Assembly: GCF_052425735.1 (NCBI RefSeq)
Contig: NC_135760.1
Span: 3,782,001-3,846,000 of the forward strand
Reading direction: 5' to 3'
DNA length: 64,000 bases
From: Oculina patagonica
Taxonomy: Eukaryota
Every line of letters begins with the position of its first letter. The stretch's first letter is position 1. Positions 2,148-63,091 of the stretch are shown here, in pieces. A program made the position numbers and the translations under genes. A model generated the notes under the pieces. The model was not told the DNA's origin. It saw nothing but the letters and a program-made list of their open reading frames with translations, and searched no databases.

Positions 2148-3482
2148 ATGGCCGTCGTCGAGAAAAACTGGCAAACAACAAGACTCACCGTCAAAGAAAG
2201 ATGCAAGTTTATGATCAACAACGATCTCTTCAGCGATGTGAAATTTGTTGTTGTTTGCAAGACTGAGGGCGAACGTGAAAGTAGACATGCCGTGTTGCCA
2301 GCTCACAAGTTCGTGCTGTCAATTAGCAGTCCTGTGTTTGAAGCCATGTTTTACGGTGAGTTGGCGGAGACTGGAGACTCTATTGAACTGCCTGACTGTG
2401 AGTACGAGAGTCTGTTAGAGTTGTTTCGTTACATGTACAGCGATGAAGTGCAGTTAAGCGGAAGTAATGTGATGGGAGTTCTGTATTTGGCGAAGAAATA
2501 CATAGTGCCTTCATTAGCTGATAAATGCACGCAATATCTGCATAACAACTTAGATCCGTCGAATGTTTTCAGCATCTTACCATCTGCTCAGAGATATGAC
2601 GAGAAAGACCTGGTGGATCGTTGCTTGAAACTGATCGATGAACAAACAGAAGAGGCTGTAAAATCGGATGGATTTGCGGCAATTGAGAGGTCCTTACTTG
2701 AAGCAGTAGTCGTGAGAGACACTCTGACGATTCAAGAGATAGAGCTGTTTAAAGCGGTTAACTTGTGGGCAACAAGGGAATGCGAGAGACAAGGTTTAGC
2801 GGCAGATGGTGCAATGAAAAGAAAAATTCTTGGGGAAGAAATAATCAAAGGAATACGTTTCCCAACAATGAAACTGGAAGATTTCTCCAGTGTAGTCTTG
2901 GGCAGCGACATTTTAACAAAAAAAGAAATTGCAAGTATGACCAATTGTCTCGGTTCAGCGTCGAGTTTTCCAGTGAAATTTTCAGCAACAAAGAGACGTG
3001 GTTTTCAAGTTGATGGTGATATTCAACGATGTTGTAGATTTGGCTCACCGTCTGCTTGTGGATGGAGCTATACTGGCTCCACAGATGCTATCAGTTTCTC
3101 TGTGGACAAAGATATTGTGCTTCACGGAGTGTGCTTCTTTGGCAATGAGAATAAAGCTTACTCGGTAGACCTAAAGGTAGCTGATACCTTATCAGTTCTA
3201 GTGTCTAAAACTGGACAATTTTTTTCAGAGCTATTACAGGGAGAGAATTGCAGCTATTATGGTTTTAAAGTGAACTTTGACAAAGAGAAAGTCATTTTGA
3301 AGGAAAACACGAAGTACGACTTAAGGGCTAAAATATCAGGCTCTCCTTCGTTACGTGGAGTAAATTGTGTCAGTTCTGTTCAATGTTCAGATGTAACATT
3401 CACATTTATGACTAGTGACTACCCAAATTATGGAACGGATGTTAGTGAGGGCCAATTTCCAGAGTTGTTGTTTTCTCTTTAA
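2148..3482 (+). CDS. BTB/POZ-BACK-PHR protein (BTBD3/6-like), copy 1, 444 aa, single exon
   Basis: NWQ..RCKFM.NNDLFSDVKF, PAHKFVLSISSPVFEAMFYG, LYLAKKY (BTB); IELFKAV.LWA..EC.RQ and IRFPTM (BACK); RCCRF..DAISFSVDK..GQFPELLF (PHR). Confidence 0.95.
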   Translation: MAVVEKNWQTTRLTVKERCKFMINNDLFSDVKFVVVCKTEGERESRHAVLPAHKFVLSISSPVFEAMFYGELAETGDSIELPDCEYESLLELFRYMYSDEVQLSGSNVMGVLYLAKKYIVPSLADKCTQYLHNNLDPSNVFSILPSAQRYDEKDLVDRCLKLIDEQTEEAVKSDGFAAIERSLLEAVVVRDTLTIQEIELFKAVNLWATRECERQGLAADGAMKRKILGEEIIKGIRFPTMKLEDFSSVVLGSDILTKKEIASMTNCLGSASSFPVKFSATKRRGFQVDGDIQRCCRFGSPSACGWSYTGSTDAISFSVDKDIVLHGVCFFGNENKAYSVDLKVADTLSVLVSKTGQFFSELLQGENCSYYGFKVNFDKEKVILKENTKYDLRAKISGSPSLRGVNCVSSVQCSDVTFTFMTSDYPNYGTDVSEGQFPELLFSL

Positions 3483-4374
3483 ATAAACCTTGAACATTTC
3501 GTTTATCTATCACAGATCTTACCAAATGTCAGGTGTAGATACTCTTTTAATCAAACTACCGCGTCTTTTAAATCCTGGAGTAGAAAATGATTTTTTATTC
3601 CGAGGAAAGAAGGGTGGTTACATTGAAATAGTTTTAACGCCAAACTTAACTGAAGAATAAGCTTTTTGTTTGAATTTTCAGCAGGACACCATTTGCTCAA
3701 CTTTCTCGGAGAAACTCTTCAATTCCCAAAAGTGATAACAAATAAATTCGCCTTACAGTAATAGAAATGAGACGAGAAAAATGAACTAAGAAATATAACT
3801 TCATGTATGTACAAACAAGTTGTCCGAAACATACATTAGAAGCAAAAATGCGTGGACGTAAGCCCTTGTAAAATAACAAAACAGTACTGAAACTGTAGTG
3901 TTTTCTTGTTAGATATTTATATAAAAACTCTGATGCTTATAAATAAAACTACAATGATGAAATCATTTGGCTCGATCTATGCGTTTTAAGACATGAGCTC
4001 GGCTGAGAGAACACTCATGTCTTGCAACTGGGAAAATGTCACGCAAATATACTAATATCAGTCAAAGCTCATTTCTTCAATAATAAATGTATTATTACAT
4101 ACTCGTGTGAAGGAAAATAGGCTCCTGTTTTGTGATTGGACCCCCTTCTCCTTGTACCGCCCCGCTCAACTTGTCGTCATCTTATCCCCAAAACTATTGA
4201 CACAAACATTGTAAGAACCCTTTTTAAGAGAAACAGTGTCTGTTGTAAACAAGCGTTTCCTGCAAAATATATCGCCCTAACAATACGTTGCCTATGCGTG
4301 TGCAATAATTTTGATTTTTTTTTTCCGGTTTGTTTTTACATAATACCGCTTGGTTCGATTTTCAAACTCTCGGG

Positions 4375-4398
4375 GTCACGCCTAGTGTAGTGCGTGAC
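4375..4398 (+). promoter_or_regulatory. GTCACGC-N10-GCGTGAC palindrome upstream of copy 2
   Basis: Perfect 7-bp arms ~100 bp before the ATG; same motif at 31624-31647 before copy 7. Confidence 0.5.
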
Positions 4399-4494
4399 AA
4401 ATTCCATGTAAGTAATTACAGCGGGCTCAAGTTTCCACAAGAAATTCCATTATAATCAGTTTATATTGTAGCGTAGGATTTCACAACAGAAACC

Positions 4495-61192: not shown

Positions 61193-61537
61193 TTAGTTTT
61201 TAATTAGTGTCACCAATTAGTGTGTAAAACGCTAGAACGATTGACAATAAAGTTTACTACTTTTACTACTATCCAGAGGAAGTCGTTAATGCTAATACTC
61301 GCCGGATGCAATTACTAACAGACCTAACAGACTATGAAGAATATTCTCTCTGAGTTGCGCTCTGTCAACCATAACAGATACCGACATTGCTATACTTTTA
61401 ACACTGATTCACGAACACTCCAAATCACGGCATAAGCACAACTGACCAGTCTTGCATTCACCAACAACACTTGAGCATTTGCTGTTTTCCTAACACGTGT
61501 TTATTGCTCATATAAGACGCAACTTGACTAAATTAGT

Positions 61538-61635
61538 TAGCGTGACCGAGAAATGTTTACACCAACAAACACATATCCTGTCACGCTAACTGATTGCGTG
61601 ATGACTTCCTCCTAAGTAATTTTATATTCAAATTT
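61538..61635 (+). promoter_or_regulatory. Upstream module of copy 12
   Basis: TAGCGTGACC..GTCACGCTAACTGATTGCGTGATGACTTCC..TTTTATATTCAAATT. Confidence 0.55.
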
Positions 61636-61744
61636 TATAAGCTACCGCTGGATCGAGTTGCCACCCACATTTCCACGAAAACTACACTGCTTCGCAAACT
61701 GAAATATTCTTCGTCTATATTTCTTCGTTCTCAGTACAGAAACC

Positions 61745-63091
61745 ATGGCTGTCGTCGAGAAAAACTGGCAAATAACAAGACCCACCATCAAAGAAAGAAA
61801 CAAGTTTATGTTCAACAATGATCTCTTCAGCGATGTGAAGTTCGTTGTTCGCAAGACTGATGGCGAAAGCGAAAGTAAACAAGTGATTCCTTCTCACAAG
61901 TTCGTGCTGTCGATTAGCAGTCCTGTGTTTGAAGCCATGTTTTACGGTGAGCTGGCGGAGACTGGAGACTCTATTGAACTGCCTGACTGTGAGTACGAGA
62001 GTTTGTTGGAGTTGTTTCGCTACATTTACAGCGATGAAGTGAACCTGACCGGAAGTAATGTGATGGGAGTGTTGTATTTGGCGAAGAAATACATGGTGCC
62101 TTCACTGGCTGATAAATGCACGGAGTATCTGCAAGATAACTTAGATCCTTCGAATGTTTTCTGTATCCTGCCCTCTGCTCAGAAATATGAAGAGAAGGAC
62201 CTGGTGGATCGATGCTGGAAAGTGATCGATAAACAGACAGACGAGGCTGTGAAATCAAACGGATTTGCGGCAATTGAGAGGTTCTTACTTGAAGCAGTAG
62301 TCGTAAGAGACACTTTGACGATTGAAGAGATAGAGCTGTTTAAAGCTGTTGACTTGTGGGCAACAAAGGAGTGTGAGATGCAAGGTTTAGCGGCAGATGG
62401 TGCAATAAAACGAAAAATTCTTGGAAAAGAAGTGATTAAAGGAATACGCTTTCCAACAATGAAGGAAGATGACTTCGCTCGTGCAGTGTTGGACAGTGAT
62501 ATTTTATCAAAAGAAGAAATCGTCAGCATCATCAAACATCTGAATTCAATCCCGAGTTCTCCAGTGGGATTCCCAGAAACCAAAAGGTCTGGTTTTTGCG
62601 GAGGTATTCAACGATGTTTTAGATTTGGCATGATCAGGTCAGAAGATACACGTCGTTATGGTGGCCCGATATACGATGCCGTCAAATTCTCTGTGGATAA
62701 AGATATTGAGCTACATGGAGTGTGCTTCTTTGGCAGTGAGAGTTATTCTTACTCTGTAGAATTGAATGTAACTGACGCCAAGAGTGGAACAGTTTTAGTG
62801 TCAAAAACTGGGCAATTTCCCTCAAAGCAATTACAGTGCGAGAAATATAGCTACTATGGTTTTGAAGTGTTGTTTGACAAAAAAAGTACTTTAACTTTAA
62901 AAAGAAACACCACGTACGAGATATGGGCTAAAATCTCAGGACCTCTTTCGTTAAGTGGACAAGACGGTATGGGCTCTGTTACATGTCGAGAAGTAACATT
63001 TACGTTTATGGAGGGGAACAACGCCTGGTTGAATGGAACGAAGGTCAAAACTGGTCAATTTCCCGAATTGTTGTTTTCCTTTAGAAAATAA
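61745..63091 (+). CDS. BTB-BACK-PHR protein (BTBD3/6-like), copy 12, 448 aa
   Basis: Intact ORF; PHR and 3' flank closest to copy 4. Confidence 0.95.
   Translation: MAVVEKNWQITRPTIKERNKFMFNNDLFSDVKFVVRKTDGESESKQVIPSHKFVLSISSPVFEAMFYGELAETGDSIELPDCEYESLLELFRYIYSDEVNLTGSNVMGVLYLAKKYMVPSLADKCTEYLQDNLDPSNVFCILPSAQKYEEKDLVDRCWKVIDKQTDEAVKSNGFAAIERFLLEAVVVRDTLTIEEIELFKAVDLWATKECEMQGLAADGAIKRKILGKEVIKGIRFPTMKEDDFARAVLDSDILSKEEIVSIIKHLNSIPSSPVGFPETKRSGFCGGIQRCFRFGMIRSEDTRRYGGPIYDAVKFSVDKDIELHGVCFFGSESYSYSVELNVTDAKSGTVLVSKTGQFPSKQLQCEKYSYYGFEVLFDKKSTLTLKRNTTYEIWAKISGPLSLSGQDGMGSVTCREVTFTFMEGNNAWLNGTKVKTGQFPELLFSFRK

Follow-up and report, generated by a model that had tools for sequence, protein, structure and literature searches.

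How have neighboring copies of one gene acquired upstream regions whose closest relatives lie in one set of paralogs and 3' halves whose closest relatives lie in another? This question is raised by a tandem array in the stony coral Oculina patagonica, part of which occupies the window analyzed here, a stretch of 64,000 nucleotides (NC_135760.1, chromosome piece C3, 3782001-3846000). The window holds 12 head-to-tail units, all on the + strand, of an intronless gene of ~444 codons that is assigned by its domain profiles to the BTB-BACK-PHR family (BBP; BTBD6-like). The original prediction was that promoter/BTB halves and PHR/3' halves have been shuffled among these copies, and that a homogenized core acts as a recombination platform that re-pairs expression pattern with binding specificity. 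The mosaic observation is borne out overall, with every claimed pairing recovered. We consider it very probable that the mosaics arose by non-allelic homologous recombination, comprising unequal crossover and gene conversion, in a birth-and-death tandem array.

Upstream regions and PHR halves occur in different combinations

The full array comprises at least 27 units across 170 kb and runs 110 kb past the window. Copies inside the window are numbered c1-c12, and those outside it carry numbers with the prefix e (such as e13 or e26). We calculated maximum-likelihood (ML) trees for 24 copies from coding sequence (CDS) nt 1-540 and from nt 650-1332, termed the 5' and 3' trees. The 3' tree contains three clades (I, II and III), which coincide exactly with three 3'-flank families. 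The upstream regions form four families (U-A to U-D) that are mutually unalignable and cut across the PHR clades. U-A is paired with clades I, II and III, U-B with I and II, and U-C with I and III, and four-gamete sets are complete twice: (A,I), (A,II), (B,I), (B,II) and (A,I), (A,III), (C,I), (C,III). The non-coding flanks switch partner along with the adjoining gene half. Intact genes with re-paired modules are c1, c8, c11, e24 and e26. The features of the window are as follows.

c1, 2148..3482, + strand: intact, 444 aa; upstream U-A, PHR clade I
BACK island in c1, 2688..2797, + strand: CDS nt 541-650, codons 181-217; homogenized stretch at the linkage boundary
c2, 4495..5832, + strand: intact; upstream U-D, common only to c2 and c7; PHR clade I
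c3, 9228..10559, + strand: intact; upstream U-B (with c8, c10, e21-e23); PHR clade II (with c11, e22, e24)
c4, 15848..17180, + strand: first stop at codon 216, frameshifted (tblastn, three frames); upstream U-A; PHR clade III
c5 with upstream region, 18045..20194, + strand: intact; upstream U-A, common to c9 and e13 to about -820; PHR clade III
c6, 29274..30602, + strand: premature TGA at codon 227; upstream U-C (with e14, e25)
c7, 31736..33200, + strand: broken, with rearranged 5' end; upstream U-D
c8, 35363..36697, + strand: intact; upstream U-B, PHR clade I
c9 with upstream region, 43132..46684, + strand: reading frame broken by a transposon
Transposon in c9, 44486..45913, no strand assigned: 1428 bp, at CDS nt 532, non-autonomous DNA transposon
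c10, 56568..56747, + strand: 180-bp 5' fragment only (CDS nt 1-178); upstream U-B
c11, 58367..59704, + strand: intact; upstream and first ~380 nt of U-A type; remainder and 3' flank clade II (c3/e22/e24)
c12, 61745..63091, + strand: intact; upstream U-A; 5' part c9-like to about nt 530-650; 3' part e16-like (clade III)
Block c1-c2-c3, 2143..10575, + strand: collinear with c6-c7-c8 (29269-36709) through both intergenic regions

The PHR pairs that had been proposed, c1/c6, c3/c11, c7/c9 and the looser c4/c12, show p-distances of 0.038, 0.071, 0.068 and 0.176, respectively. Each is the nearest partner within the window, and the 3' flanks sort into the same groups as the PHR domains. The upstream groupings were recovered as well. 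The upstream region of c9 is of the c5 type (86% over 538 bp, reaching about -820), c3 groups with c10 (87% over 215 bp) and c8 (84% over 153 bp), and c2 matches c7 (68% over 605 bp, within a longer duplication). c4 and c11 group as (c4,(c11,e24)) with support 86/84 in the upstream tree, and c1, c5, c9 and c12 belong to one broad upstream family. Both the peptide described as common to c9 and c12 and the BACK peptide occur in the sequence. For several copies the true nearest relative lies outside the window: e21 for c8, e24 for c11 and, less closely, e16 for c12 and e22 for c3.

Individual copies change relatives along their length. The 5' part of c1 is e16/e13-like and the gene becomes c6-like (96%) from about nt 500-586 onward, while c6 is c1-like from about nt 400-530 onward and in its 3' flank. 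c7 consists of a c2-like 5' fragment (31736-31879, CDS nt 1-143), a 127-bp insert (31880-32006) and then CDS from nt 153, which is c2-like to about nt 630 and afterwards c9-like (93-98%). The last ~20 nt of the insert repeat the family's start-codon region, so that it ends with a second start codon; its first ~108 nt have no match elsewhere in the 204 kb examined. c9 is c5/e13/c12-like in its upstream region and CDS to about nt 530-640, and c7-like in its 3' CDS and 3' flank. By comparison, c4 is a whole-unit paralog of c12 from -170 to about +2000, and c8 is a near-copy of e21 (95% across 3.5 kb). The same module combination is found in both members of the duplicates c8/e21, c11/e24 and e14/e25, which differ by 2-14%. 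Therefore, the chimeric arrangements are old and have themselves been duplicated.

Trees of the two gene halves conflict

Separate trees for the gene partitions had been suggested as a check on the shuffling, and they proved strongly incongruent. The starred sister pairs are (c2,c7), (c9,c12) and (e15,e26) in the 5' tree, and (c1,c6), (c7,c9), (e19,e26) and (c12,e16) in the 3' tree. Approximately unbiased (AU) tests on the 3' data reject c9+c12 (p 4e-47) and c2+c7 (p 1e-43), and on the 5' data reject c7+c9 (p 0.003) and c1+c6 (p 0.026). Swapping whole trees between the partitions costs 140 and 1013 log-likelihood units (AU p 5e-29 and 2e-5). A likelihood scan for a single break placed the optimum at nt 640-700, with a change in corrected Akaike information criterion of -547; such a scan confounds rate with topology, and it is therefore backed by the topology-only AU tests. 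The pairwise homoplasy index (PHI; p<0.001) is significant for the entire gene and for both halves, and its significance in both halves indicates short conversion patches throughout the gene.

Could differing nearest relatives arise with no exchange at all, from rate heterogeneity and selection acting on a conserved, low-signal 5' half and a fast PHR half? Purifying selection is indeed stronger in the 5' half, as the ratio of non-synonymous to synonymous divergence (dN/dS, omega) is 0.23-0.27 for BTB-BACK versus 0.53 for PHR, and the 5' tree is star-like. Against this, both halves contain strongly supported, conflicting sister pairs for which the AU tests reject the alternatives, non-homologous upstream families occur in all four-gamete combinations with PHR clades, and synonymous divergence (dS) drops 4-8 fold locally, inside this array only. 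Thus, an explanation without exchange is already contradicted, and we regard it as extremely improbable.

Linkage breaks at the 3' edge of the BACK stretch

To locate the change of partner, we counted changes of PHR-clade label on trees of successive segments.

Upstream -220..-1: 11 label changes (minimum 3; shuffled mean 12.7), random-like
nt 1-300: 8 label changes, random-like
nt 301-450: 6 label changes, partial linkage
nt 451-540: 4 label changes, partial linkage
nt 541-650: 9 label changes, random-like
nt 651-760: 3 label changes, near the minimum
nt 761 to 3' flank: 2 label changes, the minimum

Differentiation between clades is ~0 at nt 181-420 and 541-660 and rises to 0.3-0.5 from nt 661. 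Linkage between the 5' and 3' parts thus breaks sharply at about nt 650-660, the 3' edge of the BACK stretch.

Breakpoints in individual copies are more widely spread. Triplet max-chi-square tests placed breaks at nt 579-586 in c1, nt 580-631 in c7, nt 636-641 in c9, nt 647-711 in c12, about nt 397 in c6 and nt 806-813 in e26. Copying-model painting, which is unreliable in the divergent 3' half because it flips between equidistant donors and was used only for segments of at least 93% identity, places a switch in c11/e24 near nt 380. Breakpoints therefore span nt ~380-820, with the majority at nt 500-710. The claim that switches fall in or near the BACK stretch holds in that they are centered there, but they are not confined to it. 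The longest run of identity shared by two copies has a median length of 49 nt; of 274 pairs, 148 have it at nt 150-300 and 59 at nt 540-660. Set against these two identity islands, the breaks (nt ~380, 400-530, 580-631, 636-641, 647-711 and 730-820) are enriched near the second, with none seen at the first, among few events that are possibly non-independent.

The BACK stretch is homogenized within this array

Measured in 20-codon windows, dS inside the array is 0.08-0.12 at codons 181-210, compared to 0.35-0.6 in neighboring windows. The same codons show a dS of 0.7-1.8 when the array is compared with other clusters on C3. Two other clusters of the same family (B and C) lack a homogenized BACK island, with dS values at these codons of 0.47 and 0.55-0.71 inside them. 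This agrees with the prediction of a homogenized BACK core. The island lies at an equivalent position in every full copy, for example at about 62285-62394 in c12. Its uniformity reflects homogenization specific to the array: the ~110-nt BACK stretch is under array-specific concerted evolution and not protein-level constraint, omega at the island being 0.65-0.73. The core as a whole is both homogenized and, by the dN/dS values given above for BTB-BACK and PHR, constrained. PHR windows with omega about 1 are found at codons 291-320, 341-360 and 391-430.

Is this core a selected recombination platform, a cis-element kept for combinatorial re-pairing of promoters with PHR domains, for instance in an immune or symbiosis adaptor repertoire? 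Such a role would fit the homogenization of the BACK island in this array only, the sharp linkage boundary at its 3' edge, the re-pairing of several intact genes (c1, c8, c11, e24 and e26), the PHR windows at omega about 1 and the size of the family (at least 627 candidate copies). On the other hand, 12 of the 27 units are damaged or fragmentary, and the prime example chimeras are broken genes: the CDS of c9 is interrupted by a 1.4-kb transposon, and the 5' end of c7 is rearranged. The island is missing from two other clusters of the family, breaks also occur at nt ~380 and ~730-820, the RNA fold of the island is unremarkable (z -0.07), and passive homology-dependent recombination predicts the same pattern. 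An Rfam search of the window gave no match. Of the platform as originally proposed, the homogenization and the boundary at its edge stand, while the core may simply be the sole part with enough similarity for recombination. We consider a selected platform unlikely. It is similarly doubtful that the BACK island is an active hotspot that reshuffles expression context and substrate specificity in a very large Cul3-adaptor repertoire of corals, as in a germline cassette exchange serving innate immunity or symbiont management, with the BTB core kept uniform by long-range exchange between clusters that lie megabases from each other.

The chimeras are supported as real sequences

Collapsed or mis-joined paralogs in a repetitive array could also create apparent chimeras. 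The region is very repetitive: word depth over the 5' CDS and the c9 transposon is 100 to 1000x the single-copy level. Logan contigs are short, and among those of four runs over 42800-47800 none bridges the c9 junctions, because the contigs break in the high-copy 5' CDS and transposon. Yet every chimera module differs by at least 4-12% from its nearest relative anywhere in the genome, and therefore no source copies have been merged. The same combinations exist twice, as the diverged duplicates described above (c8/e21, c11/e24 and e14/e25). The sequences on either side of the c9 transposon join up in frame, with the AT duplication typical of this element at an AATT target, and unique c9 segments are found with 0-2 differences per contig in the independent samples X3 and X5. 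Taken together, we judge an assembly artifact very improbable.

We searched the assembly for a second haplotype of c9 and found none, the nearest matches being 88%. We rejected an origin of c9 through recombination between two copies of the transposon, or through a mis-join at the transposon, as the flanks restore the frame with the 2-bp duplication. The switch in c9 is diffuse over nt 530-640. The transposon itself has 66-bp terminal inverted repeats, a target of AATT with AT duplication and no open reading frame (ORF) of its own of at least 60 aa, and is present in thousands of genomic copies. Its word depth is hundreds to >1000x the single-copy level in two independent DNA samples.

Contigs from a putative-RNA run (X10, 46094-47314) cover only the c9 PHR part and about 630 nt past the stop, and leave the intergenic DNA on either side of c9 and the transposon interior uncovered. 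This may be a hint, and not proof, that the disrupted c9 or an insertion-free allele is transcribed.

Segmental duplications and a probable recombination mechanism

The switches within genes are accompanied by multi-gene duplications. In the collinear blocks c1-c3 and c6-c8, relatedness shifts inside c1/c6 (about nt 500) and inside c3/c8 (about nt 550-650). e14-e15 and e25-e26 are 94% identical over 5.2 kb, and identity drops after nt ~730-820 of e15/e26. A further segmental duplication matches c10-c11 to e23-e24. Both c10 and e23 (C3:3911188-3911367) are truncated at CDS nt 178, and next to both fragments, on their 3' side, come a U-A-type upstream region and a clade II gene. Therefore, this broken arrangement was itself duplicated.

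The mosaics, boundary, local homogenization and segmental duplications were observed here; the mechanism, crossover or conversion, is inferred, as would be any effect on expression or substrate choice. Misaligned paralogs would recombine by unequal crossover or long block transfer, with a junction inside the conserved BTB-BACK part. In the product, the PHR half and 3' flank of one lineage would follow the upstream region and 5' CDS of another, and the same events would yield multi-gene segmental duplications that end inside genes. The upstream families lack mutual homology farther than about 20 nt ahead of the start codon. A promoter can therefore gain a new partner only when an exchange with one junction in the CDS takes the flank with it. 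Such an exchange would be either an unequal crossover or a block transfer with anchors in two neighboring genes. In addition, short gene-conversion tracts may scramble the 5' half and homogenize the ~110-nt BACK stretch across the array. Exchange would end at about nt 650-660 because identity collapses there, leaving the fast-evolving PHR half with a clean tree that matches the 3' flank. Selection against conversion of the PHR half would give the same picture as this collapse of identity.

The PHR clade of a gene predicts the upstream family of the next gene (mutual information (MI) 0.38, p 0.019; p 0.056 without near-copies), and does so no less well than it predicts its own (MI 0.28, p 0.09). 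This comparison is weakly suggestive of an exchanged unit that extends from one BACK stretch to the next. When 14 distant copies are included, both gene halves of the array are monophyletic, and the donors were therefore local.

Several points weigh against non-allelic recombination as the full account. Purifying selection accounts for some of the 5' conservation (dN/dS 0.2-0.3), and the lower 5' dS is seen across the family and not in the array only. The placement of the switch at the edge of the conserved block is partly a detection effect, and breakpoint counts come from events that are possibly non-independent. Physical linkage of the modules is taken from the assembly alone. Finally, reciprocal crossover and long-tract conversion are indistinguishable with these data.

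Comparison with the gene family and with other recombining arrays

The assignment of the array genes to the BBP family is based on Pfam matches to an N-terminal BTB/POZ domain (PF00651, 85.9-89.4 bits versus a cut-off of 20.5), a central BACK domain (PF07707, 33.9-35.6 bits versus 20.9) and a C-terminal PHR domain (PF08005, 96-99 bits versus 23.6, with the whole profile length covered). The best relative among solved structures is the human BTBD6 BTB domain (2vkp, E 2.6e-26), and the PHR structures of MYCBP2 and BTBD2 match the array PHR with E 4e-11 to 3e-7. By analogy with the family, the proteins are presumed to be Cul3 substrate adaptors, in which BTB would bind Cul3 and PHR would recognize the substrate (PMC1257465). 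The three-domain architecture is that of the BBP proteins BTBD1/2/3/6 (PMC1257465). In contrast to the 4-7 BBP genes per metazoan genome counted by Stogios et al. 2005 (PMC1257465), the O. patagonica genome contains at least 627 candidate BTB-BACK-PHR loci, many in intronless tandem arrays. Our literature searches for coral BTBD6/BBP expansions found no paper.

Hybrid genes formed by non-allelic recombination in tandem arrays, including promoter switches, are well known and follow a textbook mechanism. In the human KIR cluster, hybrid genes arise by unequal crossing-over (Traherne et al. 2010, PMC2816608). The KIR cluster and the coral array are alike in that non-allelic homologous recombination between tandem paralogs makes hybrids and alters copy number, pseudogene sequence is used, and promoters are switched relative to the recognition part. 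KIRs differ in being immunoglobulin-type receptors with introns, for which Alu elements have been proposed as recombination sites, whereas the coral genes are intronless and encode cytosolic adaptors, with junctions in the coding sequence and a single haplotype available. The coral array is an ordinary outcome of recombination between neighboring copies and not a new kind of system.

A second parallel is offered by fast-evolving, lineage-specific families of Cul3 adaptors, such as the MATH-BTB expansion in C. elegans (noted in PMC1257465). Like the coral family, MATH-BTB genes form large tandem families with a conserved BTB half and a fast-diverging substrate-binding half. The variable domain there is MATH and not PHR; Thomas reportedly described its adaptive evolution as a substrate-binding domain in 2006, and exchange of modules between paralogs was not the focus of those studies. 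The sea urchin Sp185/333 genes (PMC5103432) are likewise clustered and fast-diversifying, with segmental duplications, deletions and recombination between copies. They belong to an unrelated protein family for which short tandem repeats are stressed, a role for which is not seen in the coral array.

The formal tests show how a very large coral-specific BTB-BACK-PHR expansion diversifies: PHR halves form stable, fast-diverging lineages, and it is promoters and BTB-BACK halves that move between them. Should the adaptors serve in immunity, symbiosis or allorecognition, such modular exchange would generate new combinations of expression and specificity. The locus is also a clean natural example of recombination that stops where sequence identity ends.

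Condition of the array and additional observations

Across the array, 15 of the 27 units are intact and the other 12 are damaged or fragmentary. In the window the intact units number 7 of 12 (c1, c2, c3, c5, c8, c11 and c12), and c4, c6, c7, c9 and c10 are damaged (5 of 12). Of the candidate loci in the genome we scored 95; most are intact intronless ORFs, arranged in tandem clusters on several chromosomes.

Between clusters, too, the 5' and 3' trees conflict (the array compared with C3 clusters at 0.6-3.4 Mb; loci L015-L040). For the BTB core (codons 45-120), dS between the array and clusters 0.4-3 Mb away is 0.18-0.28, which does not exceed the value inside the array (0.23), and is 0.42-0.62 against the clusters closest to the array in the 3' half (C3 4.08 and 4.11 Mb, C11). 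Either the BTB core has been exchanged over megabase distances, or the founder of the array was chimeric.

Also in the window, a 164-aa ORF at 39680-40174 (- strand) has a sub-threshold match to a QRICH1 domain (29.7 bits versus a cut-off of 30.8). Two ORF fragments, at 420-761 (- strand) and 25797-26141 (- strand), match the acyl-CoA dehydrogenase 11 C-terminal domain (PF22217; E 2e-7 and 5e-12) and are 89% identical to each other. These may be exons or pseudogene pieces scattered through the array.

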